A stretch of DNA of 64,000 bases from Nageia nagi (taxonomy: Eukaryota; Plantae; Pinophyta): the NCBI GenBank assembly GCA_050084985.1, contig JBITNC010000001.1:90396001-90460000 (forward strand), given 5' to 3'. The position numbers were made by a program, and so were the translations under genes. Under the pieces are notes generated by a model. That model was given only the letters and a program-made list of their open reading frames with translations, ran no database searches and was not told where the DNA came from. Positions 1 through 27,949 of this stretch are shown here, in pieces (within the stretch, counting starts at the first letter, position 1; each line of letters starts with the position of its first letter).

Positions 1-372
1 TTGGAGGTTCAGAAATTTGAAAAACGTTTGGTTCAGTTGAATCACTTAAGGAAGAAAACATTTATTAGAATCTGTTCTAATAGTAGACTGTATATAAGAC
101 ACATGTCTCACTCTAATGTTGTACAACCTGCTCTGCAGATATTCATTTCAATAGAAGAATTACGGGTAGAGAAAGGAAATATACAACAATAATTTTAACA
201 CTGATCTTTAATATTCCTCAGACATTGTCTACTTGCTTGTGTATTTTCATCATTCTAAGAAATAACAACTACAGATTAGTATTAATCACTTCATGAAAAT
301 ACATGTCTTGAAATGTCAATGAAACCTTAAGAACTGTAGAAAGTAAAACTTCAGCTACATAGGATAACTAAC

Positions 373-403
373 CTGTATATACCTCTTCTACATCTTGTAA
401 TAT
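373..403 (-). CDS. LSM11: LSM11-like gene, internal exon (ILQDVEEVYT; end of Sm1 motif)
   Basis: Minus strand reads ttctgcag|ATATTACAAGATGTAGAAGAGGTATATACAG|gttagt. It is in phase after the 648-509 exon and gives the L-x-D-V-x-E-x-Y end of the Lsm11 Sm1 motif. An alternative donor would end the exon at 383. Later exons (Sm2) lie outside the window. Confidence 0.75.
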
Positions 404-508
404 CTGCAGAACTACAAAATGTATTATCAAGATAAACATGAAATTACCTCAAATACCATATTCTTTTCAATGGGTAAGAATTTTCAAATAGAGGTTTCAC
501 TAATGTAC

Positions 509-648
509 CATGTTCATATGGCAATCAAATGCATGCAGAAAGCCAATCAGGTTTCCTCTAACACCATGAGTGTGTCGGGTCCAGACTTGAACACGACCTC
601 TTTCTTGATAGCAGACAGAAAGATATCTTAGAGGACCTTTTGCCTTCT
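509..648 (-). CDS. LSM11: LSM11-like gene exon, Sm1 domain (EKAKGPLRYLSVCYQERGRVQVWTRHTHGVRGNLIGFLHAFDCHMNM)
   Basis: Bounded by ctgcag| and |gtacat; 140 nt with a phase-1 start matching the phase-1 end of exon 13624-13552. The peptide follows the Lsm11 pattern (PL..L..C.....V.V..R...G.RG...GFL.AFD...NM) rather than SmD2. Confidence 0.85.
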
Positions 649-896
649 CTGCAGAATAATAAAACATCAAAAAACATCCATACTGCAGCAGACTAACAGA
701 CCATACACACCAAGGCATTGAACAGGAAATGTTGAGTAAAATGAAGCCTAATACCAAAAACTATGTGAATCTCAGCAATAAAATATTTAACATTACAATC
801 AAGAATAACATCAAATAAAATTCTCAAAACAAAGACACGCTACCTTTGAATAAAATACAAAGTGTAATGGAAACCAAACAAAAAAATATATAATAT

Positions 897-1065
897 CCAT
901 TATCCAGATTTCAAAATAAAAAATTCTTGTAATTAGAGACATATAGACACTACCCCTCATGAAAAACCAAAGTCAAACTCTGAGCATCTTCCATCAGAAA
1001 GGCATAGCTTCTATTTGTTAAAAGAACAAACCTAACAGATTTTAACTTCTGCACAGAAAATTATA
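897..1065. repeat. ~165-bp host segment duplicated on both sides of the LTR element (left copy)
   Basis: ccattatccagatttcaaaat...gcacagaaaattata recurs with a few mismatches at 9634-9803. Confidence 0.9.
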
Positions 1066-1943
1066 ATAACCTAATTCTGAAATATTGCAAAACCCTGGCA
1101 GCAAACACAATATTTCTCCAAGAAAAATTTCTATTCTATAATGATAGAATTATGATCTAATAATAACTATAGAAAATTCATTCAAAACCCCACAATATTC
1201 AGGAAATCAAATCCATTCTTATTGAATTTTGAAATGAAATAGGTACAATGTAATGAATCAGCAGTACATGGCCTGAAATCTCCTTAATGATGAAAACTTC
1301 CAAAATAAAATAGTCTCCAAGCTGGCCGTTGGATGTAGATGATCAAATCTGAAGAATGATGTCACAATACATGCCCAAATATGGCTCCAAAAGGTGGATG
1401 GTTGGTGCCCCAAACTGTAGACACTGAATATGCTGTTCAAATTCTGCCCTAAGCCTTCCAATGGCTAAATATGCAATCTAGAATCACCAAGAACTGAAGC
1501 AATAATCACAACTGTAAACCCTGGGTAGGTTTACCTCATAGGAAACTCTAGGATTTTCGTCCTAGGTTTCTTAGCTAAGAGGCTCAAAGTTGACTCCTGC
1601 AGGTTTTCGTCCACAAAAGTAATCTCTTGTAGGGTTTTTGTTCTCTAGAGGTTAGGGTTTCAGCCTTCAGCCAAAAACACCAAGTACAAGAGAAATAATA
1701 ATCACCAATATCACATAAATGAGCCCCCTAGTCCCCTTTATATAGAAGAAATATTACAATTCTTCGTTGACTATTTACGAGGTTCCCATTAAAACTTAGA
1801 ACATAATATTATTTCTCCTAACACATGACCCTTATTTCTCCTTCTTATTAGTGTTATTTTTATTTTAGTATTTTCTTTCACTCTTAGGCACAAAACATAA
1901 AAATACAAATCACACAAGAGGGACTGAAAAATGGGACATTACA
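1062..1943 (-). repeat. 3' LTR
   Basis: Aligns to 4947-5603 plus 9424-9633. Ends ...gggacattaca and abuts the PPT complement aacccctccct. TATA box complement tttatatag at 1737-1745. Confidence 0.9.
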
Positions 1944-4200
1944 AACCCCTCCCTAGGATTGCTTGTCTTCACGCAATCAAACATAAACAAACCATGCTCA
2001 GTAGTAATACCAGGGTCCCAAACTAATCTGAAGAAACATTTGCACTGCTGCAATAGTTTTGACTCCATACACAAACCCTCAAAGAATACCTCCTTTACTT
2101 TGCTGATCACTGCCACTATTTGTTCTTCATTTAAAGTGCCAAGATACAAAGGAAATTGTGTATATAATTGCTCCCACTCTAACTTATCATAAGCCTTTGA
2201 ACTAATTTCTGAAACACAATAAATATGTCCATGTATATCACCGATCATCATAACCTGATCATTAAACACTGCCCCATGGAATGGAATAGCTATAACATTT
2301 GATGACTCCCAATAAATATCCAATGTTTTTCCTCTAACAATCTTCATAAATGCAACCACGAAGTTGAAAGAGAATGCAAATCCAAATTTGAGTCAAGAAC
2401 AATCCTCAACATTTGATTATCTTTTACCAATACATAAGTAATATACCTTGGAATATGAGTAAGAAACTCCTTGTATGCAACTCCTCTTTGTGTAGTAATA
2501 GAAACATCTAGCATAATAGAAGTATACACATCCCATACATTTGTAGCCAACACTTTCTGTCTATGTATCAATTTTCCACCAGCCAACAAATTAGCCCACA
2601 AAGATGTAGAGGCAGTCCCAAAATTTGCAATATTAGTGGGATTAAGCATAACAGAAAATTGTTCTTTATGTGCAGCCCCTGTATCAAATTTGGTGGTTCC
2701 CACTATGTAATGAGAAAGAAAATGATCATATTCAAATTGCTGGTCACTGTTTTCATTGTATAAACAGTCCATCCTCTTTTCATCATTACTCTCTAATTAT
2801 TCCCTTCGATAATCATCATGCATGCTTGGTTCCAATGCAATTAAACTTTGAGAATTTGATAGAACCCTTGTCACATAAAATGAGATGGGTACAAGGTGTA
2901 TCACTTACCTCTTTCAAATCTGAAACAATGCCATCTCTATTGGAAAATCCACTTCCCAACATCATTTTGATAGCTTCTATTTCTAATTTCATGTCTTCAC
3001 TACCATCATTTTCTTCATTAAACTTGGGCTCCTTACAATCATCAAATTTGAAATCACCAAAGTATAATGCTTCATCTTCATGGTCTTCACTATCCACGAG
3101 TAGGGCTACACAAAATTGTTACAATGCCATCAGAATTAACCTCATTCTTGTCAGTTGTAGCTTTTTCAATAATATCTTCATTGGTAGGGCTTAAAACAAA
3201 GTTGATAAATTCCGATTTGTTTTGAATATTTTCAGATTTACCTTCTTCAACCACGTCACTAGGTGTAACACTATCATCTTCTCCATTATTCTCAAAATTG
3301 AAAGAACTAGATGAAGTAATTACATTGCTGCCATGTAAATCAGAATTGTCCTTATTTGTCTCAACTTCATTGCAATGCTCTTGAGCTTGATCATTAAAGC
3401 TAATTGTGACAGGCCGGATAACTCCAAGATCAAAAAGCATTCTATTAGTGTAGAATATTGTGTAAATACAATTTGAAAAAGACTCTTCATGTTCACCTTC
3501 TTGGGTGACCTTTGAGATACATTGTAACTCCTCATATTCTACAAGAAATGACTCTCTAAATTCTAGCACACTCAAAGCTACGAATTTACTAAATATAGTA
3601 ATTATCTAATACTTTACTAACTATACCATAATCCCTAAGGATTAGGTGTCTAACAAATTGATCTTCACTAATTTCTATTTTTTTTCTTTACCTATTTTAT
3701 TTTTTCCACATACATGCCCATTACTCCAAGACCCTTCACATTTGAAACAAAATTGCTCCTTTCTTAATTGGGTTTTGCTTTTTTGTTTATGTTATGAGTT
3801 CTAAGGCTTTTTAAAATCTTTTTGCTACGTGTTTTCCTTATCCTTTCTTTGAGCTTTGTCTTCTTTTCTTGACTTTGGTGGAAATATAGATTTTGGTGGT
3901 GATCTTGGTAGAGAGCCTCCCTTACTACGCCATTTAGTTGCAAGTAACTTCTGAAAGAAAGATGCTTCCAGAATTCTGGTGCATCTACTTCTGGAACTCC
4001 ACTACCCAATGGCTGAATTTGCTCTTCTATTGAATTTATGTTTTGAAGTGTTGTGAAAATTTTTTATTCTATTTTGCCAATGAATCTGCATGTGTAATTT
4101 TCTTAGAATCTGAACTTTTATGACTTTGGGGAAATGTGTATTCTACCATTTGTTCGATTAGTTTCACCATAGCATCCCATTGCTCTAATTTAGACTTCAT
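1910..4200 (-). pseudogene. Frameshifted gag-derived/unknown ORF chain of the LTR element
   Basis: Near-contiguous minus ORFs 3764-4009, 3090-3575, 2816-3097, 2344-2772 and 1910-2359. Contains a CCHC knuckle, an acidic region, WEQLYTQFP (resembles a chromodomain end) and LVWDPGI near the PPT. Confidence 0.55.
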
Positions 4201-4933
4201 AGTGGCTTAAATGGAATGAATTTTTTAGCAAACCCTAAATCTATTGAAACCTGAAACACCCAAAATTGAAAATCTACAAAATCCTAGTTTTGCAATACCC
4301 AAAACCTAAAATTATTGAATTTGAAATAGCTAGAAACTTAAAACCCTGGATCTGATAATTCCGCAAAAACTTTTACTCAAAACCCCAATTCTGCCTAAAA
4401 TCCTCAAGTTAAAATTTTTTTGACTTGCCAAGATAATAGATCAAGACTTTTTATGCCCAAACATGGCCTTCAAACCTACAAATTTTATCTCCCAAGCCTA
4501 GACAACTTAGTCTAGGAATGCAATTTTTTTCAAAAAAATATCGTTTTGACCCTAAAATTGCTTTTTAAGTGCAAAACCCCTTGATCTACTAAATCACCCA
4601 AAAATCTCCAATACTCAGAAGCTAGAAACTGAAGATCTTAATTTTCCACAGCAAACTCTGACTCAAGATTCTAAAGAATACTAGATCTGATGAATGTAGT
4701 CTTGGATCTATGCAAAACAATATCATATCTACAAAATCTCCTTGTAATAATGATAGATCTATCAAATCTACTCAAAATAATATTAGATCTACTTGAGACA
4801 ATACTGGATCTGCTGGATCTATTCAAAATATAACTCGATCTATTGGATCTACTTGCAACAATGCTAGATCTACTCTAAATACTTGTGGATCTATTAGATC
4901 TGATGGATCTCCCCACATGATGGCAAGATCCAA

Positions 4934-4945
4934 GCTCTGATACCA
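4934..4945 (-). promoter_or_regulatory. Primer binding site, tRNA-iMet (TGGTATCAGAGC)
   Basis: gctctgatacca lies 1 nt from the LTR edge at 4947. Confidence 0.9.
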
Positions 4946-5960
4946 CCGTAATGACCTCACTCTGAAATATTGCAAAACCCTAGCAAACACAATATTTCTC
5001 CAAGAAAAATTTCTATTCTATAATGATAGAATTATGATCTAATAATAACTATAGCAAATTCATTCAAAACCCTACAATATTCAGGAAATCAAAGCCATTC
5101 TTATTGAATTTTGAAATGAAATAGGTACATTGCAATGAATCAACAATACATGGCCTGAAATCTCCTTATTGATGAAAACTTTCAAAATAAAATAGTCTCC
5201 AAGCTGGCCGTTGGAGGTAAATGATCAAATCTGAAGAATGATGTCACAATACATGCCCAAATATGGCTCCAAAAGGTGGACGGCTGGTGCCCCAAACCGT
5301 AGACACTAAATATGTTGTTCAAATCTTGTCCTAAGCCCTCCAATGGCTGAATATGCAATCTGGAATCACCAAGAACTGAAGCAATAATCACAACTGTAAG
5401 CCCTGGGTAGGTTTACCTTATAGGAAACTCTAGGGTTTTCATCCTCAAAGCTGACTCTTGCAGGTTTTCGTCTACAAAAGTAATCTCTCGTAGAGTTTTT
5501 GTCCTCAAGAGATTAGGGTTTTAGCCTTCAACCAAAACACCAAGCACAAGAGAAATAATAATCACCAACATCAAATAAATGAGCCCCCAAGTCCCCTTTG
5601 TTCCACATGATCAGGGAATGGGGAAACAGTGGAATAGGGGAAAAATAGGGTCATTTTTTGGAGAACGGTAAATATAATACTAGTAAAAATTATCAGAATT
5701 TTAACGTTTCCAATTCATTATTATTATAATGAATGATCGTATTATCAAATTTAATCATGTATACAAATTAAAAACATGAAATTTGAAATTAGAAATTTAA
5801 CTTCAAGACATAATCATAAAAAAAGGGTAAATCTGATAACAAAATCATAATGTCATAGGTTTGAAAGATTGAATCAAATACATAGAGGGGACATCAGTAT
5901 GTCGAATAAGTATATGAAAAACAAAATGAAAATACCAAAATAACCATTATAGTCTATGTC

Positions 5961-8564
5961 CTATGGCTCTATAGGCTCATGTGCTAATGGTTGTGTATCC
6001 ATATCCTCCTCATCTACTAAGCTCTTATCATCCAAATGAAGAGTATGCAATGGCAATCCAAACATCCACTCATCAGCCTCATCATCATCAGCCTCAAGCT
6101 GGCCTGCCTCCACTGGATCAATGTCCCAACATGCAGCTGGACTAGCCATATACTCTAGCGTAACTCTCTTACAAAGGCAAAGAGAGTTATGCACTGCAAC
6201 TAACTTCTCTGCTCTACGATAAGTAAGTCTATTCCTTTGGAGACTATGGATGAAGCCATAGGTAGACCAATTTCTCTCCACAGCAGATGAACTACCAACC
6301 TACAAACAATCATTCAAATTAGATTTCTCATTTTTGATTATGTGAGAATGAGAAATTTAAGATCTCAAACAATCATTCAAATTTCAAATTGACAAATAGA
6401 CTATAAGTCTATAATCACAAATGGCATCTACTATCCTAGGAAAGAAGCCTAATCGCAAGATGCTTCAAGTGTGGAGCATCATCTCCATATAGCTCCCACC
6501 ATCCAATGGGATCAGTTTGGGCAATGGTAGCTCTATCCTCCTTGCACTCTGGCATACTGAAATGAGGACTCTTCTCTAACTATACGGCCATCCTTTCTTG
6601 AAAACATCTTGGCAAAAAAGTTCATGAACCCATCTTTCAACTCAATATCATCATTAGGTGCCATTTTTCCAATGTTTGGTGCATACCATTTTGGGTTCAA
6701 CACATGAGCAGCCATATGCAAAGAGGTACTCATCTTATTCCACCTACAAAAAATTTAAAAAAAAAAATAATTTAATAAACTTAAAGACTAAAGTTAACAC
6801 ACCAAATTGAAACTAAAGTCAACAATCAACATTTGTTACCTCTTCTCTATGATCGGTTTAATATGGCTTTCATAAAAAGAAGGATCTTTGGCATTAATTA
6901 TTTTTTTCATTTCCCCAAGCATGCTATTGAAGGTCTCATATATCTCTCCTAAATTAGGAGAATCCGTATCAGCATACCTTATCACTTCAAAAACTAGGGA
7001 AATAAAAGATATTATGTACCTACATTCAATAAAAAAAGAGTTAAAAATCTTAGAACTAATTGAACGGTTACCTAGTAACCAATCAAACTTGAAATTCAAA
7101 CTACAATAGTGAAACTTTCAAACTTTGTTACCTGGCTTCAGCCCACCAATTTTCATCTAAGACTTTATCTCTAAGTCTTTTACCCTCCTGTGTTTGAGAT
7201 TCTGGCCACCTCTTCCATTCTACACAAACTACCATGGATTGTAGCGCCTCCTACACCTCAATCATCCTTTGCAATAGGATGAAATAAGTGGCATATCTCG
7301 TATCTATAGGTTTAAGAAACTCCTCCTTTGAGAAGGAGCAAAAGAGCGCCAATGATGTATGATGGTTGCAAATAAACATTTGCAAGTCTCTCGTTTCTGC
7401 AACCACATTCTTCATCCAATCTATTTTCCCAATGTCCTTCAATGCATGAACGCAACATGGGGTCCAAAAAATGTGCTTGTAAGTTCCCTCTATCAATTTT
7501 CCTACACACTTGCAAATAGAGGCTGCATTTGTAATTATTTGTACAAAAAAAAATTAAAACATTAAAATTTGGCATTTGCACAACAAAAAATTAATTTGAA
7601 AACTAAAAGCAAACTTAGTGAAGTGATTACCTGAACAACATTGGAGGATCCAATCTCCTCAATAGCCTCCTTCAATAGGAGAAACTAGAACTCTGCATCC
7701 TTCTTTTTCCCCGAGCAATCAAAAGCTCGAAGAAAATAAAGACCCTCTAAACATGACACCATTATATTGATGAGTGGACGTTAACGAATGTCAGTCCATC
7801 CATCCATAATAATGGAACATCCACTACGCACCCATGTAGCCTTCAACTCCTGCATCATCAAACTGCATCTAGTATACTGCTTCTCCAAAAGAGAAGTACA
7901 GAGTCTAGTCTCGCCAGGTAGTACATATGAAGGCCCAGCCAACCTTACTTCCTCAAATGCTGCCCTCAAGTAAGGTGAGTGTGCAAGATGAAAAGGCAAG
8001 GCATGTGCATAAAATAATTTGGCCACTGCATCATCAGCTCTCTCTTTCTGTTGCAAGTTTAATGCTTCAACTATATTTCCTCTTTTTTTGGAGGGGAATG
8101 TAGAACTTAGCAAGCTAGAAAAGAGTCCAATTTCTTTTTCTCTAGTTGATGAAGAGGAGGATACATGGGAGGCTTGGCTAGATTTAGGAATGGCAAGCCC
8201 ATGATTCTTAAGGTAAGCCTCTTGTGTAAGCCTACTATCTTCTGCAAACATAAATTTATTTATTTTTTTACAAACTCTCACCCTTGTCCCATGTTTATCA
8301 GTCAAATGTGATTCAACCCTAATATAACTCCCTTTAAATACAAATGTGACATTTATAAGTTCTTGCTCCCCCTTCAATTCTTTTTCCAACATCTAGGTTT
8401 GTGACAAATTGCAACAAAGGTTTAGGATTAAATGGCCATTTAGCAAAACCTTTTAACATTGTGGATGGGAAATCAAAAATTGATGTGTTTTCTTACTCAT
8501 TTTCAACTCCCATTTTTGTTTCTACCTCATAGCTTTGATTTTCTTCATCAACCTCACTACTCAT
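5961..8564 (-). pseudogene. hAT transposase pseudogene (intron-containing, with stops and frameshifts)
   Basis: Motifs in order: BED finger (GGARTYKCHIC..GSYIRVESHL..RVC), GCSIIMDGWTD, IFWTPCCVHAL, TRYATYFILL, LHMAAHVLNPKWY, ERNWSTYGFIHSLQRNRL..RAEKLV. Confidence 0.9.
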
Positions 8565-9180
8565 CTTGGTTTTTTTTTTAGAAAACAACTACAAGTAAAG
8601 TTTAACCTAAATAAGTAGAGACTGAGAAATAGAAAAACCTTGGATTGTGCTAGGTAACTTTTTTCTCCTCCTTAGCTTTTGTCCTCTACACTGTTGTGTT
8701 TCTTTTAATCCTTGCTCTCTTTCTCTTCCTTGCTATCTTTTTCTTCTACTATTGCATTTTTCTTCCTCCTTGCTCTCTTTCTCCTCTACACAATGACAAG
8801 TGATTACAAAATCACTTTTAGAGCACCTTTTTAGGGTTAGAGGGGGTGCAAACATGGGTTTTTTTGCTCATTTTCAACTCCCATTTATGTTTCTACTTCA
8901 TAGCTTTGATTTTCTTCCACAACCTCACTACTCATCTTGGTTTTTTTTTTTAGAAAACAACTACAAGTAAAGTTTAAAGTTTAAACTAAACAAGTAAAGA
9001 TTGAGAAACAGAAAAACCTTGGATTGTGCTAGGTAACTTTCTTCTCCTCCTTGGCTTTTGTCCTCTACACTGTTGTGTTTCTCTTCCTCCTTGCTCTCTT
9101 TCTTCTCTACACAATGACAAGTGATTACAAAATCACTTTTAGAGCACCTTTTTAGGGTTAGAGGGGGTGTAAACATGGGT
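8496..9180. repeat. Tandem duplication (~360 bp and ~310 bp copies) of the transposase start and leader region
   Basis: ctcattttcaactccc...gggggtg(c/t)aaacatgggt at about 8496-8858 and 8868-9180. Confidence 0.85.
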
Positions 9181-9633
9181 GGGGCCCATCATATTTTTTC
9201 CCCCGGCTTTCCTGGGTCTGGCCGCAGGGGGAACATTGGCCGTTCCCGATTTGGTGGACAACCGGGGAACATTTCCCCCATCCTAGGGGACGTCTCAATG
9301 ATGTCAACTAGCCATCTCCCAAAAAGGGAACGGCTGGGAAACGTTTCCCCGGGCGTTTCTAAAACTTGGGAACGTTGGGAACAGCTCCTCCAAGAGAGGG
9401 AACGCGTCCCCGTGGACCACGTGTTGTAATTCTCCGTTGACTATTTACAAGGTGCCCATAATAACTTAGAACATAATATTATTTCTCCTAACAAATGACC
9501 CTTATTTCTCCTTCTTATTAGTTTTATTTTTATTTTAGTATTTTCTTTCACACTTAGGCACAAAACATAAAAATACAAATCACACACACACCACACTATG
9601 TACACAATGGGGACTGAAAAACGGGACATTACA

Positions 9634-9803
9634 CCATTGTCCAGATTTCAAAATAAAAAAAATCTTGTAATTAGAGACATATAGACAGTACCCATCATGA
9701 AAAACCAAAGTCAAACTCTGAGCATCTTCCATCAGAAAGGTATAGCCTGTGTTTGTTAAAAGAACAAACCTAACAGAATTTAACTTCTGCACAGAAAATT
9801 ATA
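9634..9803. repeat. ~165-bp duplicated host segment (right copy)
   Basis: Begins immediately after the LTR end ...attaca and matches 897-1065. Confidence 0.9.
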
Positions 9804-10811
9804 GACTAACCTCTGATCAAGACGTTAGACATGTTTATGATGGATACAGAAAGCCATATAATAGAAATAAGTTATAACTATATTTTTCTTCATATATACT
9901 CTTAGCTTTTAGTGCCAAGTACTTTTGACATTAGCATGTATTACTCAATATTGTTTGTGGTAATGATGAATGCGCACTGCTAACTTGATCAATTAGATAC
10001 TTCAGATTAACGAGGGCAGCTGATCAATACTCTTTAAATTAATGATATATGTCTATGCCCATAAACAAAGCAAGATGTTCATCCAGGCTTGTGTTTAAAT
10101 GCAAATTAAGAAATTAGGATTGCAGATAATAAGTCATGAAGACACCAAGAATGCTAAAATAGTCATTGTTGAAAGGAAAATTTTAAACAAAATCCTCCCC
10201 TTAAATGAAGAATGTCAAATAAAACACTGCAAGAAGTCCCCAAAAGTTCAAGAATATTGAGCACAGTGAGGGAGCATGTGATATATTGGATGAAGCAAAG
10301 ACAACATAATATGAAAAAGGTGCAGCCACTAATTTTTAACGAGCAAAATATTACAGTTTCAATAGACATTCGCTTTGATTGTGATCTAAAAAATAAAGAT
10401 TATTGTAATGAACAATTTGTGTTGGACATTGTGATTAAATTTTTTTGCTATTCGAAATTTTTATCAGCCTCTTTGAAAAAACCAACATTTTTAACTTGTT
10501 TGCTATTTTACAGGGTCCTTTCTGTGTTTTAATCTTTCCTTTTCCTGGAGGATGGATTCTGGTATTGGACATACAATATTCAAACTCTATTTCGAGTGTA
10601 GTCATTAACAGCAGAGACATGAACGAAGAAGCACATAAAGGTCAAGGACTTATTAAATTTTTCAAGATATCTGGTACACAAGCATGCTGATGGCCAATAA
10701 TTGTAGAGGGAGAAATCAATCCATGACATAGCTCCCATTCTCAAGTGTTGTTTATCGTCTCCCACCTACAAGTCCTTAATGATGATAGTAGTAAAATTTG
10801 TACCCAAACTC

Positions 10812-11425
10812 TAATTCAGCTAGAGAAACTTCATCAAGACCAAGCACCAAGAATCAAGTTTTTGTAACCAACAATTAGCCTAATATGTACCCCAAGGAAA
10901 AGGTTATCAACATTGGGTTTGAAGTATCTGATGTCGAGTGTTAATCAGAGACCAAAGTTTACAAAACACAAGAAGCAATATCTTGCATAGCCACCCAAGA
11001 AGTATAAATCCCTAATAAAAATCCAATAATGAACATCTCCTTGGATTTGATTAAAACATGGAACTACAAATTCAAACAAGGAACAGGGCAAAGAACACCT
11101 GAATTTGGCTTTGATAATTCAGCTTGAGAAATGTCATCAAAGTTCATCAAAGACCAAGCATCTTGAAGCATGTTCTTTTAACAAACAGTTAAAGCTAGCC
11201 TGTTCCCCATGGAAAAGGTTATTGAAATTGGCATTGAGATATCTGATGTCAAGCATTAAGCAGAGACCAAAGTTCACAAAAAAATAAAAAGCAATATCTT
11301 GAATAGCCACCAAAGAAATATAAATCCCTAATAGAATCCAACAATGCACATATATTGAATTGAGACAAGCATGGAACTACAAATTTAAATGAAAAGGAAC
11401 AGAACAAATAACACCTGAGTTTGGC
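10812..11425. repeat. Diverged tandem duplication, ~300-bp unit x2
   Basis: aattcagct...gaacacctgaatttggctt at about 10812-11110 and 11114-11425. Confidence 0.75.
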
Positions 11426-13551
11426 TTCAATACTTCACTGACACTTCGCTGTTGAGCAAAAACTTTTGAATTGTCAAAATTTATGAAAATATTCTTAATG
11501 GAAGAATCTTTGAGCTTTAGTTCTCATCATGCACTAAAAATTACAAAATTCAACAGTATGCATTGGAATCAACAAGTTAACAAGAATTTGAGTGACCATA
11601 TTTGTACCGTAGTTCTATGTTTGTGTGCATAAGTCACATGCCCAACTAGAAACGTGATGTCATTATTACAATATCATGTCAAGAGAGTGTCAAGTTACTC
11701 AAAGCAACAAAGGCATGGAATGTCATATGCGTCATTTTATTGGCTTCAATCCTAGAATAGAAACTTGAGCTTTCGTAATCTAAAAAATTTTCTGCTGTAT
11801 AAGAAAGTTATATTCTCTTACATGTGTCAGTGCCCAACTTTCCTCTTATCATTATTATTTAAACAAGAAAAATGGCAACTTCCCCAACTTGCTTTCTGAG
11901 TCAGCTGACTCTGCTAACAATGATTTCTAACTCTAGCTAATGTCTAGAGGCACATAGCCCAAGTTTCAAGTTTGTCATCATTCAAAAAGTACTCAAACAG
12001 CCAAAAATATTGTCATCTATAAACTCATCATATTCACATATGTTCTGAGGTTGCATGCTAGCAGGTCTGTCCATTCTCATCTATGTTCTACCACTCCTGC
12101 TAATGCCATTTCCTATCACGTCACTACTGGCTGCTCCATTCAATACTTGACCCTGGGTCTCATTCTTCATTCTGGGTCCTAGTTACTACATGTAATCAAC
12201 CTTGTCATACCTTTCAAGTTTTCTACGAGCCCCTTAAAACCTGCTTTCCAGAGGTTTCTATTTTGCTTCCCATAACTTAAGGAAAAGCTTTAAATGAAGA
12301 AACTTCAAATATAATAATTAGTAACTAACTACTTTATTTTTGGACAATCTTCATTTAGATGTTCTATGTATCTGAATCAATTATGTACTGAATTAAGGTG
12401 TACTTGCCTTAGTGGGGATAACAATATCTGTTGAGAATAAATAGGAGATGGTAGCCAAAATGAAGATTCTTCTGTATTCTGAAGATGTATCACGATTCAC
12501 AACACTATACTGTTGGGTTACCTATATATTGTTATTGAAAGGAATGTATTAATCATCCATGAAATATAAATAAGTGTCATGAGAGGTAGTGAAACTCCAT
12601 TAATCATTATTGAAGATGCATTTCTCATATAAGCATTGCATTGTTAATCCTTTCTCATAGGAAGATGATACAATATTGATTCACCTCTTGAAGAAGTTCT
12701 TTTGATGTCATCATACAATGAGATGATTTATCCTCCATGCAAGAAGTTGATGTACTAGTACTAGATCTATAATTGGATCTTCAACGGGTGAAAGGAATGC
12801 AGTAGGCTATGGCTATCCAATCAATGCCTGAACAGAGTGATTAAATGAAAATCACAATAGTGAAGAAGTATGTTTCATTTTTTCTATAATTGTTCCATTA
12901 ATTGGTTAGCTTGTTATGCATTTGTCGTTCTATAGTACTTGTGGTTGAAAACTTGAAAGCTTTACATACGACATGAATCCATCAATCAGTATTACAAATA
13001 TTTTTAGTTCCTTCCATATCTAAATGCCTACCTAATTAACAAAATACACAAAAAACAAGATCATAAACGTAAGTGAATTGGTATTTTCTATTCAGGAAAA
13101 CCAAATAGAAAATTGTCTAAATGACATAACAATCAATTTGTAAGCGCAGATTGATTTTGTCAACAGGGCACAGGAGGTGGATTAAGCAATTGCTGGAAAA
13201 AAATATTAAGTTCTCCAGGTTTATATATGGATATCAAAAAAATTTAGGCCAGTTAAAAGAAGAGTGTATATGGAAAACTGTATCATTATCAGTGACTCAG
13301 TCAAATAAAGAAAATGTTCAAATGGGAGCTGGCACTGAGCACAGAAATATTGAATAGTGAGCTAGAGTTCATATTTCACTTGCTGAGAATATATGCGATA
13401 GTTGAGATAGCTGAAAGATAAGGCAAAACGAAGAACATACAGAATTTTTAAGGGAGTTGTTTTACAAGGGAAAAATATCAATCTGGCATCCTACTTTTGG
13501 AAATTAATGACATTAAACTGTTTAACAAAAAACAAATGGAAATGATAATAC

Positions 13552-13624
13552 CAGCAAGCATGTCAAAGATCTTGACTTGACGAGCCTTTTCTGCTGCCTT
13601 TTCAAGGTGGAGGGAAGTTCGAGC
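13552..13624 (-). CDS. LSM11: LSM11-like gene exon (ARTSLHLEKAAEKARQVKIFDMLA)
   Basis: tatcag|GCT...GCTG|gtatta; 73 nt and open. The phase-1 end joins exon 648-509 to make a Glu codon (G|AG). Confidence 0.8.
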
Positions 13625-13736
13625 CTGATAGCATAACCAACATGTCAATACTCGTGCACCTAAACAAATCTTTGATATAAATTAATTTATAGATTTTATG
13701 AAAATTACATTTTTAAGTACAAGACCAGTTTCCTAC

Positions 13737-13814
13737 CTTAGCTCGTTCTTGAGCTTCAATTGACTCCGCTGATCGGCTCTTATGAAATATATTAACTACT
13801 GATTCAGGGACTTC
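13737..13814 (-). CDS. LSM11: LSM11-like gene exon (EVPESVVNIFHKSRSAESIEAQERAK)
   Basis: ttcttacag|GAA...AAG|gtagga; 78 nt, phase 0-0, open. Confidence 0.8.
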
Positions 13815-13920
13815 CTGTAAGAAATACACAAATGTCTTAGCTTCTATGTGTGATAACACTAAACATCTAGAATATTGATGCATGGGAAAAAATAAATTAT
13901 ATTGCCCAAACTACACAGAC

Positions 13921-14028
13921 CTCTGGCAAAATGTGACGACACCTGTTCAGATTGTCCAAGGGTCGCACTCGCGGATTGGGAGGCTGAAGTCCCTCAGTTT
14001 GAAGGGCTTCCAATGGATCAAAATCTAG
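13921..14028 (-). CDS. LSM11: LSM11-like gene exon with the N-terminal motif (LDFDPLEALQTEGLQPPNPRVRPLDNLNRCRHILPE)
   Basis: ctgcag|CTA...GAG|gtctgt. FDPL.AL....P.P.....NL resembles the conserved Lsm11 N-terminal FLASH-binding segment (FDPLLALY..PP.PYPNAP.F.N). The acceptor could alternatively start the exon at 14024. Confidence 0.8.
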
Positions 14029-14939
14029 CTGCAGTTGAACCGTACTTTAGAATTCTACATTCTTTATCCCCATAAGATGCTTTAGCCATAGTAAAAAACT
14101 TAGGAAGGTCAAAACAAAGTGCAAAGATGGGAAAATAACTTGATCAAACTATACAGCTTTGAACAGACATAAGTGCATCAGATAAACATATTCCCTTAAT
14201 TTACTTATGATGAAACAATCTCCACAAAATAAACAATGAAGTGAAACTAAAGGTATCACTAATTTTCAGTTTCAATTAAATTAGTAGCACTTGCCCTGAA
14301 GCTGCAACTTCCTTAAGGATTCCCAAGCAAACACGGTTTCCTCTGGAGCATCATCTAAGGAAGACTGTTCTACAGAAATAAACTTTGTCCCTGTCCTCTT
14401 TATTTTCTGAAGCTGATTTCAAGTGTTGATGTTCATAATCCTGTTGTCACCCTCCATTTGAAAGGTAATTTCAAGCAAGCAATGGCATGGTGATGATCCA
14501 AATCGGGTAAAATATCAGTCAAAGATGAAACTAAGGAGTGAATTGAAACAAACAAGAAAAAATGTAACAATTACCCACTTCCTCTGATTTTAAAAAAAGT
14601 AAAGCTTAGGAATAATAAGATGTCTAGGTAGGTTGAAAAGCTGCAAAAAGCCAAGACCAGGATGGAATGAATTAGCTGGAATTTGTTTACCTTCGGGATT
14701 TGGACAGGAAGCCTGGCAACTCTTAGATAGTAGCTTTTTGAATCTTAGATTGTACTTCTCCAAGAGGCAAAGCTGGCATGCCAAACATTCAAATGGGTTT
14801 GAACATTTGGCTAGATTCTGAACAATTTATTTCCAATTTGAACATAGCAAAGAGGAACTCTGTTATGCTTTTAACTGACAGTTGCTGCCCCTTTTAAAGA
14901 ATAGTTTGTGAGAAAGTACTGGAAACTGTTCATGCTTTG

Positions 14940-15395
14940 GTTTATGGTCCAAATTCCAATTAAGACAGTCAATGTTTTTAGGAGTTGAATGCCTATCAAT
15001 ATTAAAAAGAGCCTTTGGACGTTAGCACATATGATTGAGAACATAGAAGATAAAGAAGGGCAGCAGGTTTTTGTATGGAATTGTAATGAATTTGCAAGTG
15101 ATACAAAATGAATTTCCAGTCTTGAACAAGCCAAAGAGGAGCTTTGGTATGTTTTTAGTTGACAGTTAATGCCCCTTTGAAAGGGTACTTTGTGAGATTG
15201 TATATGTGAAGGAATGGAAGTCATTCATGACTCAGTTATGCTCATAATTCCAATTAAGACAGGCAAATTTTTTGGAGGTTGATTGCCTATGAATATCAAA
15301 AGATCCCTATGGTGTTAGTATATATGGTAGAAGACATATAAAGAAGGGCAGCAGGATTTTGCTCGGAATTGTAATGAATTTGTTAGGGATACAGG
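14940..15395. repeat. Direct repeat pair of ~160 bp
   Basis: aattccaattaagacag...ggaattgtaatgaatttg at about 14950-15100 and 15246-15390. Confidence 0.7.
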
Positions 15396-15449
15396 ATGAA
15401 AAAGTTATTAAATGTTGCTGACCCTTTCTCATAAGGTAAGGCCAATGTT

Positions 15450-16750
15450 CAAGAGATTTGTACATAGTACAACAACCAGAATGGTAGAGACAAAATGTAT
15501 TCTAAGTTGGAATATGTTTTTGGCATCTAAAGCATTCTCTAAATCTTAAACAGGTATGACTATATATGGTGTGCTGTTCCTTTTTGTTCTGTCTAACCAT
15601 CATGTGCTAGATATTTCTTTTTATCTTCATAAAGGAGCTAAATGGGGTGATCTGAAGTTCAAGGGGATTCTGTAGAAATGTGTTACATTTAAAAACTTAA
15701 AGATTCTTGGACATTACTGAATTTCTTTGGGTAGTCTCCTCGGTATCATTGTTTTGATTTTTCAATTCAGAAGTTGCAATTATCAATCAAGACTGTTTGA
15801 GAAAGCCAAAACTTTTACGAAAATAAGGGTCTGTAGAAAAGCTCAAGGAAGAAGATAAAAATCAAGGCGTATATTCAGCAAGATCCAGAAAATCCGATAT
15901 TTCATTAAATGATGGTGTGATCTAAAAATGGCATAAGACTATTAGAGCTTGTTATGACTCTAGGAGTATAAAATTCAGAGTCCTAGACAAAAGTTCAAAA
16001 CTATTGAATCAAGGAATGCAATAAAGGATCTAAATATTGCTATAAAATGACAAAGGCTAGGAATTATAGTAGGAATAGATTGCATAGAAAAAAGTGGTCC
16101 TCATTTTTATGAAAGAGAAGTTATAAAAACAAACCTTCTTTGAAGTTTATAAAGAATGCTTCCCTTCTACGGGCTTTGATAAGAATGTCCAAAGGAATAA
16201 AAGATATGCTCCATGGTGATTCATAGAAAGATACGTAGGTGAGAAGAAATGACATTCTTGGTACATCCATCTGTTTATGAAATTAATGATGCAACTAGGT
16301 CTTTGATAAATGAGAAATACCATTGTATTAGTCGTTTCCCTGGAGAGTATATAAAGAGTTAGAGTTATATGCTTTCTAAAGAATTGGTAATGGTGTATAA
16401 GGAGGCATTCTAAGACTATCTAAGCTATTTTCAAACTTGTTTCCAAGGAAAGATGATAGAAATTTGATCAAGAAATGGAGATATATTACCATCCCCATTG
16501 TTATCATGTGAAATTGTGGCCAAAGCTTTAGCGAACAGACTCAACATTGTGCATCCTCCACTTGCGTTGGTAACTCGAACTAGATTACTTTATCATTAAT
16601 TCAAACTTGCAAGGAAATATCTAGGGTTACAATGTCCACAAAACAAGGCTGTACCATGTATGAGCCTTATAGAAAGCTTATCATCAAATAGGATGGCCTT
16701 TAAGATAATGCAAAGCAGGTAGGAATTCAGGATTTCATTTTATTCTCAAA
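15450..16750 (+). mobile_element. Decayed L1 LINE ORF2 fragment
   Basis: Remnants of LSNH (endonuclease SDH), IKKWRYITI..IVAKALANRL (RT start) and an EKAY..I.W-like motif; many stops. Confidence 0.6.
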
Positions 16751-18329
16751 GAACACAAATTTGATGACCCAATTTAGATCTTATCTTCCCAAAATAGATG
16801 AGATGACTGAGATCCTGTTTGTTGAAGTAATTTATCCCTCTCATGGAGGAAGAGAACTTGAAGAACCCAATTGATAAATAGATAAAGGGATCAATAAAAC
16901 CACAAAAATTTAAAATCAGTAGAGACTTAAACATACTAAAACATTCAAAAGAATGAACCTATCTCGTTTGATGAACAGAAATAGTAGGTAAAGAACGCAA
17001 CAAACATCTATGATATTACCAATACTACATAAGCTACAAGTAAAGACTCCAGGCAGCTCATGACCATGTTCATGAAATCACAAGGCAAGACTACCCAGAT
17101 GAATTCAGTGATTGAGTGGCAGCAGCAAGTAGAAATGTACAGGCAACAAAGTTATCAGACAGGCAGCAAAGCCATGGAATTGGAAGTGATGACGATGTTT
17201 GCCAAAGAAGGTGGATGTGTGGACAGGATGACTTCTTTGGCTACAAGGAAAAACTATGTCATGAAGTTTTCAAGATGAAACAATGAGGGATTGAAAATGG
17301 GCCAGCTCATCTCTTGGCTATCCAACATCTCCCAATTGTAAAAGGTCAGAAAACTCTTTAAATCCGATATTCAGATACAACATTCAGTGTACGAATACAT
17401 TTTTCTCAAATAGAAAGGGATGGCCACTCTAAACAATGTTTGAATAGGTTTTGTGGTGAAAATAGGTTATTGCAGGATATAGAAGACTTCCTGGGCTAAT
17501 TACAAACTCGTGGGAGCTTAACTGAGTGAATTGTGGGTGTTACCCATGATAGTTACAAAAAAAAAACTCGCTGAGTACATGCCCAAAGTTGGCCCTCCCT
17601 TGTTTTTCAAGCTCAACTCGATTAGTTTTTTTGGGCTTGTCGAGTTTTTGTTTACTCGTTTGTTTTACTTGTGTGAATTTTCTTTTTTAACTCACAAATT
17701 TATTTTTCACTCACTAGTTTTTTTTACCCCTCGACTATTTATTATGGATATTAATTTTGGATTTGTATAATGTCAATTAATTGTGATATGCATGAAAAAA
17801 AAAAATCCAATGACAAATTGCATTTTCTTAGGGTTTTTTGGCCAAATTTTTCTGATTTTTTTGCCAAGTCCAAGTCCAGATTTGGCAAGAGTTTCTCTAA
17901 TATGTTACCCAGTACAAAAAACCATATTCTGAAGAGAAACAAAAGTCCGCATGTAACCATGGTATACTTTGCATGAATGATTTGATGTTCTTATTTTCCT
18001 ACTATTTTTGCCATTTGTAAATTGAAATTGGAGTATTTGATTGTCAATGGAGCAATGTTCGGTCATGCTAAACAACATTTCATTAAGTGAAGCCACAGGA
18101 ATAAGATTTTAACTGTAAGACAATCAAAGAGCTATATAGTTAATTGGAATCAGTTAAGTTGTCGAATTCCAAATATTTACTGGTACTAAATCATTTTTCT
18201 TTAAATTGCAGGAGCTTCAAGGGGATACATTACTATATAACATTAAATCAGAAACCAAAGAGCCTTGGGAAAGGTCAATTTGAGTCTTAAGATTAGAAAG
18301 ATCATGTAAGAACCACAGAACTGTGTCAG

Positions 18330-20040
18330 CATGATATATATGGAGAAAGATTTGCCAGATTGGAAAACCAGATTGAAAATGAGCCATATGAAGATCAAGT
18401 TGATGTGGAAAAGGTAAATAGTTCGCCCATGCAAATAGATGCATGCTTCAACATTCATGGCTACTTTGATGAGCAAAAGATACCATTTTACCAATTAAAC
18501 ATGTTAAGTGACGCTTTGATTTGGAGGGAGAGTTATGCGTTAACATTGATAATGAAAAATGATTCTTCAGTGACTACAAAAGTGTCTTCAAGCATCTTAG
18601 AGAAAAGGAATTGTATCCTATTCGTTATGACTGGTGGTGCCTGAAATTACATTGATGAAGTGAAGAGTGATGCAGTGCCTCTCTATGTGTGTGAAGATGT
18701 TTTAGGCAGTGCATGTATATGGGCTAGATATGCCAATTTCCTAAAGAGGAAGCAGAAGTCTCACTCAATCAAGGAGGCTCAGCCCTATCTTATCAATAAA
18801 GATGAACACAAGAAAATGACTTCTCTTGTTTTTCACAATCAAGCAAAAAGATTGATAAAGGCAAGTAAAAAGCTTGTGTTGTTGAAGGCCAAGTAAAAAG
18901 AAAAGATAGTCGAAATAGAATCTTCAAGCAAATTGTCCCAGGATAAAGCAACTAAAAAGAGTTACTTCAAAGGTTCAAGTAACTGGTCCAAGACTAGAAG
19001 GTTTGCTTGCAACAAGAGAGGTGGAATTTGAAATATAATTGCAGCCTGATTCACCATTGTTTAACACTGGGTTGTATATGCATTTGATATTTAGAAAATA
19101 AAAAATCGAGAAGGTAAGTACAAGGTCTCTTCCAAAAAGTTGTTATCCATCCTCATTTTTTAGCACTTGATTCACCCGTCGTCTTGGTACCCAAGAAGGA
19201 TGTCATATAGAGGATGTGTGCACAATAGATGGCCATTTCCATGAATTAAAGATCTTCTTCATCAATTACAACCTGCCAACTATTTCACAGATTTGTCCTT
19301 AAGATTAGAATATCATCAACTTGAAGGCAGGAGAACCCTTGGAAAACTTGTTTCCAGACAAAGCTAGCTTTTATTAATGCTTTGCACTTCCATAAGATCT
19401 ACACATTGCACCCACCACATTCATGAATGTAATGAATGATTATTTTTCTCAATCAATCATTCATTAGCTAGATGGAATTCTTGCATAAAGTACCACATGG
19501 GAGGAGCATCTAAACCATTAAGAACCTTGGAAACATTGGAAAAAATCAACTGTGTTAATTTTTAGAAAGTGAGTTTGCATAGCAACCCTTCCTGTATCCA
19601 GGGTTTGTGGTTGATAGACGGTTGACCAAACAAAAATAGTAGCAGTCCTCAAATAGCTAAAGCCTACCACCAATGTAAGTTACTCGTTTTCTTGGGAAAA
19701 AATTTATCCAAAGTTATTTGAGGGAAAAAAGAAAAGCCAACAATACAAGGTTTATACCTTCCCTAATTTGCAGCAATTTTAACCAGTTTAAGATTGAAAT
19801 CGATGCATTAGGTTGTTCTAGAGAAGCTATGCTTATGCAAAGGAGGAGGATCGTTATGTTATTGTGTTTCTTGTGAAGTTATTTTGAAAGTATCATGTAC
19901 ACAAAAAATTGCTTCTATTGATTGCTGTCAAGAGATGGAATCACTATGTTTGGTGTAGAAACAATCATCCATATTGATAATCAAACACAAGAAGTACAAG
20001 AAAGAGGTCAACAATTAATAAAACTTCTCTTGGATGGGAT
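18330..20040 (+). mobile_element. Decayed Ty3/Gypsy gag-pol remnant
   Basis: A gag-like segment (DALIW) is followed by SPVVLVPKKD..RMC, YHQ, PTTFMNVMND, TWEEHL, FKIEIDA and VKRWNHY, in RT-RNase H order. Confidence 0.7.
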
Positions 20041-20428
20041 ATCTTTAATATCCTATATTGGGATATTGTATTTGTTTAGTAAAAGGTAAAAAATTTATTC
20101 AAAAAAATTCAAGTTTTAGATATGATTTTGATGATCTGCCTTTTTGGCTAGGTTCAAAATGCAATCAAAATAAACATTATATAGAGCCCTATATGTGGTC
20201 AAAATAAACATGAAACTCTTCCAAGTATTCTAAATTATTATCTTCATTTCCATGTAACCCAAAGTAGAGTTTATTATATCACGAAATGTTAGGGGAGTTG
20301 GGTGAAAAATGATTTTGGAAACTCTCAAATGATGTAAAGAGAGTCTCATGTTCAAATCCCACCCCTCACATGATGGAGATATGTCTCAAATGTCACATGA
20401 TAGTGACATCTCGATTTTTGAACCAATT

Positions 20429-22543
20429 TGTAAAAAATGGGGGGGGGGGGGTGTGGAGGGGGTAGGGTGGGGTGAATCAGTGTGATAAATTAAAAATCAA
20501 CTCTTTAACTTTACCACTTAAATGAGATTGTGCAAACATAAAACCAACTAGAGCAAGCACCACAAGAAAAGCATCACATAACACAAGATGTAACGAGGTT
20601 CACCAATGTGGCTACATCCTCGGATAAGACTGCTTGGATCATGGTCCAAAACCAGCCATTTCAAAGCACCAACTTTACAATCAGTTTATCAACACCAATC
20701 GAATGGAGCACCAACCCCAAGTTTATCAACTGCAACTGAAAGGAGCACTAACTCCTACTCTACCAGCACCAACTAGAAAGAACCCCAATCCCTCTTGCCA
20801 AGCACCAACTTGACGAACCAACAGTTCAATAAATTTTGACAATAAATTGCCAAACCCTTACTCTAAGACCCTCAATGATGTTGCTCTTCAATCTTCACTC
20901 TCTCGACTATCTTTGTTTGAATCTTACTATTGTTTTCATAGCCCATTGCTTATCATCTTTGCCAATCTATCTCTGCATGTCATCACCGGCATATCATTCA
21001 TACACACTTCAACATGCTACAGTCATCTACACGGTTCTATTTGCACACTACAGCTCATACATGCTCTATTTGCCTTACACAACCTGATTACTTCAGCACA
21101 CTATCACCATATGTTCCCCTAACCATGTGATACTTGTTCCTCAATCACTGTGATTGCGCCTAACAACAGTAAACTCTCCATATACATCTTCGGCAATTAC
21201 AGATGCATGTAATCATCAGCTTCATTTCAAAAAGACAATAACGATTTTTCAGTTACACAGCAACTCTCAACATACATGTCAACTTCTTCAACAGTAATCG
21301 AATGTTGATAACGATTAATGATAATTGTCACACATGTTTCCAATGCACAATACTGAGTTTCAGTACTCTCTCCATGAAGTTTGAAACTCCTTTAAGCTTT
21401 TTCACACAGTTCCTTGCATGTCGATAGCTAACATAGCATTTAAGCTACTATCTGGGCCCCTTGCATGCTTGTCAGCATCATATTTGTCATCTAGGATTCA
21501 ATCCGGTACTAAAACTCCCTTGTCGGTACTTGACTATTCAGAATTACCAATTTTAGTTCATTGGATCATTGCTTGGATAGGCATCATCATCTCTCTTTCT
21601 GCATGCTTTATCCTCCTTGTCGGTCTTTGACTTGGTCTCCACCAAACCTTTCCAAATAAATCATCGAACTTAGAGTAATTTTGGCAATCTTCTGCTTGCT
21701 GATGTCACTCTCTAGTAACGCTTTGTTCTATCTCCTTCACCAATACTTAACTTCGTTGTCTTCTAGTCTCCTTGCCTAAGGTGCCAGATCCTTTGTATTG
21801 TTGAACACCATCCATTCGTTGATGTCATCCACCAACATCTCTTTGCCTTTGCTCGCTTTGTCGGTCCTTAACTCGCACAGCAGAGAGTTCCTTCATCCGT
21901 ATTGTCGAACTTAGTTAAATTGGGAGCGACCATCGAAATGTTGACGTCATGTACTGGTATCCTTCATTGTATTTTCCTTTACCTGCACCTAACTTTACTG
22001 TGTTACGTTCTTCTCATCCGCACCACCGAAATCAATGCATTTTGGGTCATCTTCGCATCACTTACATCATCCACAAATGACTTGAGCCTTTGTCTTCCTT
22101 TACCGGTCCTTTGGCAAGCTTTCAACGAACCTCTCCATCTAAGATGTCGGAATCAGTTCATTTGGAACGACCTTCTCATTTGTTACATCATCAACCGGCA
22201 ATTCTTTGTTATTTTTGCTTTATCGATACTCAACCTCCCTCACAACTACGACCTATTGTCTAAGCAACTGGACTTAGTGCATTTTGTAGCGCCATTGTTC
22301 TGCTAACGTCATCACCCAGGAAAAAAAGGTTTTCAGCATCTATCTAAGTATACACGCATCCAACATACTGGCAGCCATTATTATCAATCAGCAACCATGA
22401 TAAACACCCGGCAGCACTAATAAACACTTGGCAGCAACATGATCATACCCGACATGTGTTCAATCACCTAGCAAACCTCAATCTTATCACCTGGCATGCT
22501 ATCTCACTATGTTGACAACAATGACAATCTCTTTGTATTAACA
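20429..22543 (-). mobile_element. Probable long LTR (Copia-type), reverse orientation
   Basis: TG...CA ends. G-run plus GGGTGAATCAGT and ACACAAGATGTAACGAGGTTCACC near one end; reverse-complement start TGTTAATAC...GTCATTGTTGTCAAC. No clean TSD. Confidence 0.45.
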
Positions 22544-24303: not shown

Positions 24304-25568
24304 TGTAGAATTTAAACTAAACTCTTAATATTTCAGTATTGTTCAACTCAATAATGTAGCAATAATCTTGATAAGATTATAACTCTCCAACATACACAGC
24401 ATAAGCATTAACATAAGTTGACCAATTATACACCCAAGATCAATTCCGGTAATACCCAGATACAAGAATGAACCATTAAAAAACTTGGAGCAATATCACT
24501 ATATACCATGAACAAATAAATGAGCATTTGAATGTTGAAGCAAACTACTCTAATGATACTCAAATAGATCACAAATGAAATATTGCAATCAAATTCATTT
24601 ATCTATTATGATAGGATACCATACTCTCCTATCAATGCTCTCATAGAGCTCTCTACTCTACTACATGCTCTTACAATGATCAATCCTTTATATAGATTCT
24701 TACAATCCACTACAAAACAATACATTTGTTATACTCGGTTTAATCTTGATGCTAACAAATCACTAACAACCAAAAAGAAGAAAAGAATAGTCACTACAAT
24801 TACAAATGGTTACAACAAAAAAACCTATATATATATATATTATATATATATATATATACATTTGTTATACTCAGTTTAATCTTGATATATATAGGTTTTT
24901 GTGTTGTAACCATTTGTAATTGTAGTGACTATTCTTTTCTTCTTTTTGGTTGTTAGTGATTTGTTAGCATCAAGATTAAATTGAGTATAACAAATGTGTG
25001 TGTGTGTGTATATATATATATATAGGTTTTTGTGTTGTAACCATTTGTAATTGTAGTGACTATTCTTTTCTTCTTTTTGGTTGTTAGTGATTTGTTAGCA
25101 TCAAGATTAAACTGAGTATAACAAATGTATTGTTTTGTAGTGGATTGTAAGAATCTATATAAAGGATTGATCATTGTAAGAGCATGTAGTAGAGTAGAGA
25201 GCTGTATGAGAGCATTGATAGGAGAGTATGGTATCCTATCATAATAGATAAATGAATTTGATTGCAATAATTCATTTGTGATATATATATATATATATAG
25301 GTTTTTGTGTTGTAACCATTTGTAATTGTAGTGACTATTCTTTTCTTCTTTTTGGTTGTTAGTGATTTGTTAGCATCAAGATTAAACTGAGTATAAAAAA
25401 TGTATATATTAAACTGAGTATAAAAAATGTATATATATATACATTTTTTATACTCAGTTTAATCTTGATGCTAACAAATCACTAACAACCAAAAACCAAA
25501 AAGAAGAAAAGAATAGTCACTACAATTACAAATGGTTACAACACAAAAACCTATATATTATATGTTAT

Positions 25569-25611
<43 letters not shown>

Positions 25612-27619: not shown

Positions 27620-27890
27620 CCATGAGTTTGTAAAATACAAGAAGAGGATGGATCATACTAAGACTTATGCTCTTCAGGTGTATGCGGTTACAAATAAATT
27701 TTATTCTTAGGAAATGCCTATTTGCAATCACTTTTGGGATCGTAGGAGGTCTCAAGGATTTCACTGATTTTGTAAAATACAAGGGGATGGATCATACTAA
27801 GACTTACGCTCTTCAGGTGTAGGCAACTACAAATTGAAATAACTTTTATTCTTAGGAAATGCCTATTTGCAACCACTTTTGGGATCCTAG
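27620..27890. repeat. Tandem duplication of ~120 bp
   Basis: tttgtaaaatacaag...ggatcatactaagactta...aggaaatgcctatttgcaa occurs twice. Confidence 0.75.
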
Positions 27891-27949
27891 TAGGTCTCAT
27901 CATCTGCAAAGGACTCATGGTAGATCTGACAAAGGTTGCAGTAATTGTT

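Follow-up and report, generated by a model that had tools for sequence, protein, structure and literature searches.

A transcribed and spliced gene in the gymnosperm Nageia nagi that is probably an orthologue of LSM11

Does a gymnosperm carry a gene for LSm11, the protein which marks the histone-processing U7 particle of animals, and what might such a gene be used for in a plant? The question is raised by a stretch of 64,000 nucleotides from Nageia nagi (assembly GCA_050084985.1, contig JBITNC010000001.1, positions 90,396,001 to 90,460,000), which was analysed at its full length and is called the window here. In the animal U7 small nuclear ribonucleoprotein (snRNP), LSm11 replaces SmD2 in the Sm ring together with LSm10, and its N-terminus binds FLASH (structure 6v4x; PMC10578488). 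The pair of LSm11 and FLASH recruits CPSF73, CPSF100 and symplekin, and histone pre-mRNA is cleaved downstream of its stem-loop (PMC10578488). Positions 373..30423 of the window very probably hold the first six coding exons of a transcribed and correctly spliced LSM11 orthologue, the product of which would by homology be the subunit at the SmD2 position of a U7-type ring.

The five exons which a first-pass annotation of this DNA had joined by GT-AG sites into one stop-free frame were reproduced on the minus strand, with their translations agreeing letter for letter. They are numbered 2 to 6 here (Table 1). By sequence reading each has an AG before it and a GT after it, and their phases are compatible. 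Because exon 2 starts at an acceptor site it cannot be the first exon. The five exons of the earlier gene extent stand, and a start-codon exon lying 16.3 kb upstream of them was added. This exon 1 was located by scanning for the pattern '(L)DF(L/F)S', which is conserved ahead of 'DFDPL' in the homologues. Its product MAAEDD...HPSLDFLS, directly followed by GTAAG, represents the first half of the LSM11_N motif and aligns with the N-termini of the protein from Cryptomeria and of other orthologues. Together the six exons account for about 170 of the 260-270 codons expected.

Evidence for expression came from contigs of four runs (X1, X2, X3 and X5) which belong to four studies of the same species and were aligned to positions 13350-14450. 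The sampled words of 13553-14028 were present to 43% in X1, X2 and X3, which is about the exonic share, and to 25% in X5. Each run yielded one spliced contig, with lengths of 1410, 531, 1100, and 1127 nt for X1, X2, X3, and X5, respectively. In all four runs the contigs cover exactly 13552-13623/4, 13736/7-13813/4, and 13920/1-14028/9 and omit the 112 and 106 nt in between, the ends of which read CT..AC on the plus strand and thus GT..AG on the minus strand. On either side 30 loose letters were compared by eye: the 30 to the left of 13552 read, in reverse complement, as the start of exon 5 (648 downwards), and the 30 to the right of 14029 as the end of exon 1 (30370..30341). In run X1 the contig extends 195 nt past 14029, which exceeds the 84-nt coding part of exon 1 by about 110 nt. 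Transcripts confirm four of the five junctions in the window (1-2, 2-3, 3-4 and 4-5), including those across both giant introns. Among these four are the junctions A-B, B-C, and C-D of the first-pass annotation, which were found in the spliced contigs of all four runs. The junction of exons 5 and 6 is read from the genomic sequence.

Orthologous proteins gave the same picture of the gene. Identities were counted exon by exon, and the full-length proteins P0096 from Cryptomeria japonica (SUGI_0845700) and P0002 stand in for the window protein in searches and folds. Exons 2-6 tile the Cryptomeria protein collinearly at 92, 92, 96, 85, and 100% identity, that is with 33/36, 24/26, 23/24, 40/46, and 10/10 residues, adding up to 130/142 (92%). 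For Ginkgo (Gb_34777, P0097) the sum is 126/142 (89%), with 34/36 in exon 2, and the ten residues of exon 6 are identical in all gymnosperm orthologues. The Taxus chinensis model (KI387_005552, P0001), which is without the exon 2 segment, is identical at 94/106 positions of exons 3-6. Over exons 2-6 three transcriptome proteins show 84-85% identity, ferns, a lycophyte and a moss 63-67%, and Klebsormidium 58%. The proteins of Cryptomeria, Ginkgo and Taxus are direct orthologues of the window gene with a collinear layout; they are annotated merely as hypothetical or uncharacterised, and their first 20 or so residues differ from those of the window gene. As the exons tile the Cryptomeria protein collinearly and the contigs remove the introns at the predicted sites, the exon structure is far beyond chance.

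The next question is to which branch of the Sm proteins the gene belongs. With exon 5 alone, human LSm11 was the best match among solved structures (E 0.011), and no other Sm protein came below E 0.1. Exons 5-6, which encode the Sm1 motif, align with residues 165-207 of human LSm11. The Pfam LSM model gave a weak 14.3 bits with the exon alone and 42-47 bits with full-length orthologues, which are 85-100% identical to the window gene in exons 5-6. The orthologue P0002 matched LSm11 with E 3.9e-9 and 39.7 bits as compared to E 2.8e-6 and 30.4 bits for SmD2. This difference became wide with a profile of 18 plant homologues, which yielded E 1.3e-25 and 93.7 bits for human LSm11 and E 2.7e-12 and 50.1 bits for the best SmD2. 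The profile matches human LSm11 in three collinear stretches, namely residues 24-78, the Sm1 region and the Sm2 region. The first of these has an independent E of 0.009 and overlaps the FLASH-binding residues, which are located at about 20-50 in human LSm11 (PMC10578488). In the window gene the corresponding N-terminal segment of the LSM11_N type, ...LDFLS-L-DFDPLEALQTEGLQPPNPRVRPLDNL, is encoded by exons 1-2. A Pfam search with single N-terminal exons gave nothing, using a copy of Pfam without the PF28412 model. Nearly all homologues found carry a precomputed PF28412 (LSM11_N) assignment and most of them also PF01423 (LSM); those without PF28412 or LSM are a few partial or N-terminally truncated models such as that of Taxus, which is without PF28412. 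Judged by search scores rather than by a phylogeny, the window gene is thus of the LSm11 type, closer to human LSm11 than to SmD2 or any other Sm or LSm protein, and the LSM11 identity proposed in the first-pass annotation is upheld by the profile scores and by the LSM11_N segment together with Sm1.

The layout of the protein also resembles that of human and animal LSm11 (6v4x_D, 8g1u_D, 9nh5_D), with a shared order of LDxxSxxFDPLxAL (LSM11_N), long linker, Sm1, loop, and Sm2. Human LSm11 is the best sequence match of the exon and of the plant profile as well as the top structural match. In all full-length orthologues, which are 247-266 residues long, Sm2 follows after a loop of about 60 residues in the form RHxxQVFLRGDSVVMV (RHVGQVFLRGDSVVMV-like), and in the window gene its exons lie outside the window. 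Differences from the human protein concern mainly the lengths of the connecting parts. About 110 residues precede Sm1 in the plant protein as compared to 154 in human LSm11, the beta3-beta4 loop has about 60 residues in the plant orthologues as compared to about 130, and for the glycine-arginine cluster of human LSm11 (residues 58-79) the exons read show no evident counterpart. The partners of human LSm11 are U7 RNA, LSm10 and FLASH, whereas their counterparts in plants are only putative.

To see how far the family reaches, exon 5 was compared by an exhaustive phmmer search to 1.84 billion representative sequences. This gave 93 matches. In 47 of them Sm1 is preceded by the N-terminal motif at a distance of about 95 residues, and 44 carry Sm2. 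Full-length relatives were found in gymnosperms (Cryptomeria japonica, Ginkgo, Taxus chinensis), ferns (Ceratopteris, Adiantum), a lycophyte (Diphasiastrum), mosses (Ceratodon, Sphagnum) and streptophyte algae (Klebsormidium, Chlorokybus, Chara, Mesostigma). Relatives from chlorophytes include Micractinium conductrix PSC71977.1, which bears the name 'U7 snRNA-associated Sm LSm11' at NCBI. No angiosperm homologue was found in the single-sequence search, in the profile search, or among the ten top otherwise unnamed matches that were looked up, and the same searches did recover the far more distant chlorophyte members. The protein of the window gene itself was not found in the collection used for the single-sequence and profile searches. 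This distribution suggests, as far as sequence searches can tell, that the angiosperms lost LSM11 when they arose.

What the protein does can be outlined by analogy with the animal system. The Sm fold of LSM11 would sit at the SmD2 position of a U7-type heptameric Sm ring, next to LSm10. The N-terminal LSM11_N motif (LDFLS-x-DFDPLEAL...PPNPRVRPLDNL), encoded by exons 1-2, might bind a FLASH-like adaptor, which would bring in a cleavage module of CPSF73, CPSF100 and symplekin, and this module would then cut histone pre-mRNAs after their 3' stem-loop. Outside the Sm fold no part of the plant proteins is better conserved than this motif, which argues for a conserved partner. A U7-like histone pathway in a gymnosperm is plausible by analogy. 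A wider proposal would be that gymnosperms, ferns, lycophytes, mosses, and streptophyte algae still cleave replication-dependent histone mRNAs in the animal manner, by U7 snRNP and FLASH, and that flowering plants lost this pathway at their base along with LSM11. With a conserved and expressed LSM11, a strongly constrained FLASH-type motif and two large searches without an angiosperm match, the data are compatible with such retention followed by loss, which we regard as a tentative possibility, somewhat short of an even chance.

Several points weigh against the interpretation of the locus as an LSM11 gene with a role in a U7-type ring, and they have to be considered along with other explanations. 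One of these is that the gene encodes a diverged SmD2 or another LSm paralogue. By homology SmD2 occupies the same place in the ring, its Sm fold, with an N-terminal helix, is similar, and it was the second-best family in every search. In the AlphaFold model of the Cryptomeria protein (mean pLDDT, the predicted local distance difference test, 72, and above 90 in the Sm fold) the Sm fold lies behind a long helix, and the top match of this model in Foldseek was the LSm11 chain of human U7 snRNP with the SmD2 chains practically tied, so that the predicted structure supports the fold and not the choice between the LSm11 and SmD2 subfamilies. The sequences, on the other hand, place LSm11 ahead of SmD2 by 43 bits with the profile. 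Proteins of the SmD2 type are about 110-120 residues long (110-118 for SmD2 itself), with adjoining Sm1 and Sm2 and without LSM11_N or a long loop, whereas here an extension of about 110 residues with the conserved motif precedes Sm1 and the loop between Sm1 and Sm2 has about 60 residues, both of which are features of LSm11. An SmD2 or other LSm paralogue is therefore most improbable. Alternatively, the copy might be truncated, or a pseudogene that is still transcribed, its 3' part being disrupted beyond the window. The next coding exon is expected to begin with VRR.., and by sequence reading no fitting exon is present in 1..372; nor did the C-terminal 95 residues of the orthologues match anywhere within the 64-kb window. 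The exons for the loop and Sm2 hence lie outside the window, and the intactness attributed to the gene in the first-pass annotation therefore holds only for about the first 170 codons. Giant transposon-filled introns make a disruption conceivable, and the Taxus model is a chimera with a transposase. It is a guess that the four runs are RNA; they were taken as such because the contigs are intron-less and the contig sets amount to about 50 Mb. Against a pseudogene stand the six open exons, which are 85-100% identical to orthologues except for the variable first 20 residues. The sole tabulated exon difference between accessions, 13767 C>T in run X5, changes GCG to GCA and is synonymous (Ala). Two further differences were seen in the same run, an uncharacterised one in exon 2 and, near 620 in the exon 5 segment LRYLS, a Phe in place of Tyr; as all orthologues have Phe at this site, the reference allele carries a derived Tyr. 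Finally, past exon 4 the contigs continue downstream for 955 nt, a length that could accommodate the lacking coding sequence of about 290 nt and a 3' untranslated region (UTR). A pseudogene or truncated gene appears very unlikely, if slightly less so than an SmD2 paralogue.

A more serious competitor accepts the gene as a true LSM11 orthologue and holds that it no longer acts in histone 3'-end cleavage, its product being part of a variant Sm ring on another small RNA or of another RNA process, with a different partner for the N-terminal motif. An Rfam search of the 64-kb window detected no U7 (RF00066) and no histone stem-loop. A U7 snRNA has a non-canonical Sm site, which in a plant would be expected to be AAUUUGUCUAG-like. 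USE-like motifs (USE, upstream sequence element) at 38735 and 63060, away from the U4 genes described below, were considered as marks of a U7-like gene and rejected, since no TATA or snRNA-like sequence follows downstream. We know of no experimental demonstration of a U7 snRNP in any land plant, and reviews up to 2023 present plants as being without one (PMC10578488; PMC8600027). Flowering plants polyadenylate their histone mRNAs, and a validated U7 RNA is not known from any plant (PMC5054213). A 2026 preprint by Zhao, Bond, and Ni Leathlobhair in addition describes a 'decoupling' of SLBP and stem-loops in plants (10.64898/2026.10.14.759114). A shift in function is at variance with the FLASH-type motif, at least 26/36 residues of which are kept from Klebsormidium to the window gene, and with the distribution of LSM11, which fits the lineages reported to have canonical histone stem-loops. 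We consider such a shift unlikely, yet clearly less so than a pseudogene or an SmD2 paralogue. The explanation of the locus as an expressed LSM11 orthologue, from which a U7-type role is derived by homology, remains preferred.

According to the same preprint, land plants have homologues of LSM10 and LSM11, FLASH occurs widely outside animals, SLBP is present in seed plants, and features of the histone stem-loop are strongly conserved in bryophytes and gymnosperms (10.64898/2026.10.14.759114). This changes the frame in which the locus was introduced. The premise that plants are without Lsm10 and Lsm11 agrees with the reviews; it concerns flowering plants and has been overtaken for other green plants. 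The contrast drawn with flowering plants does not apply, as the genome is that of a gymnosperm with Cryptomeria (92%), Ginkgo (89%) and Taxus as nearest relatives. These identities, the lack of angiosperm matches and the giant repeat-filled introns point within the gymnosperms most likely to a conifer close to Cupressales. Nor is this an undescribed system, since LSM11 is already widespread in non-flowering green plants, a Pfam family LSM11_N exists, and the preprint covers it (10.64898/2026.10.14.759114). The window gene is a further member of a known family, one more LSM11 verified at the transcript level in a gymnosperm, and it fits the revised view of the preprint, in which the machinery for histone 3' ends is an ancestral one that plants lost late in their evolution (10.64898/2026.10.14.759114). 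What the window adds is the model of a gene containing two giant introns, and an apparent boundary of LSM11 presence and absence between gymnosperms and angiosperms. It speaks to the LSM11 gene and not to the U7 pathway itself. Its practical value is that it points to tractable relatives such as mosses and Ceratopteris for work on function.

Table 1. Positions in the window of the LSM11 gene parts and of the U4 snRNA genes
Feature	Position	Strand	Description	Basis
Probable 5' UTR	30424..30533	-	extent inferred from run X1 contig; collinearity with the window assumed, transcription start unmapped	
Coding exon 1	30340..30423	-	ATG 30423..30421; 28 codons; donor GT 30339-30338	motif scan and sequence reading
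Intron 1	14029..30339	-	16.3 kb, repeat-rich	
Coding exon 2 (= A)	13921..14028	-	36 codons, phase 0/0; LDFDPLEALQ...ILPE; core of LSM11_N / FLASH-binding-type motif	
Coding exon 3 (= B)	13737..13814	-	26 codons	
Coding exon 4 (= C)	13552..13624	-	24 codons + 1 nt; part of long helix preceding Sm fold	
Intron 4	649..13551	-	12.9 kb, between exons 4 and 5	
Coding exon 5 (= D)	509..648	-	2 nt + 46 codons; helix preceding Sm fold and Sm1 motif	
Coding exon 6 (= E)	373..403	-	10 codons + 1 nt, ILQDVEEVYT; Sm1 end; donor GT 372-371	
Start of next intron	1..372	-	beta3-beta4 loop and Sm2 exons beyond left window edge	
U4 snRNA gene	43011-43162	+	full-length	Rfam, 107-111 bits for the three genes
U4 snRNA gene	44812-44963	+	full-length	Rfam, as above
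U4 snRNA gene	50746-50897	+	full-length	Rfam, as above

The two giant introns differ in their content. No long open reading frames (ORFs) were found in intron 1 (14029..30339). Intron 4 contains at 5961-8392 of the minus strand a string of broken ORFs, the decayed remnants of hAT-type transposases. ORFs at 7251-8392 gave matches to DUF659, which is typical of transposases of this type, with E 1.5e-7 and 2.5e-5, and the transposase ORFs of the intron share 30-36% identity with the N-terminal region of the Taxus protein. That protein (partial, 403 amino acids) consists of a hAT-like transposase fragment at residues ~55-175 fused to LSM11 from exon 3 on and is without the LSM11_N exons. The fusion looks like a mis-annotation arising from a giant transposon-filled intron. 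A possible extra exon at ~14288-14350 (ending in ..FAWESLRKLQLQGK ahead of a gt) had been spotted by eye and was rejected, as it is unused in all four contigs.

Some of the homologues depart from the common layout. In four transcriptome-derived plant proteins (P0003, P0005, P0009, P0098) two or three tandem LDFxSxxFDxLxAL...PP motifs stand ahead of the Sm domain, unlike in gymnosperms, mosses and animals, where the motif is present as a single copy; the tandem copies could reflect multivalent partner binding. In Chara braunii (CBR_g40430, P0011/P0143, 1247-1309 amino acids) and Mesostigma (P0030, 804 amino acids) the unit of LSM11_N and Sm lies inside much longer models, that of Chara being named as containing an N-acetyltransferase domain. 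These long models may be real fusions or merged neighbouring genes.

Beyond the start of the LSM11 gene, at a distance of 13-20 kb, lie the three U4 snRNA genes of Table 1. Each is preceded by the conserved plant USE GTCCCACATGG, located at about -74, and by a TATA-like box, CTATAAGA, at about -30. The genes are 93% identical including their flanks, and copy b shows several changes in the 3' stem.

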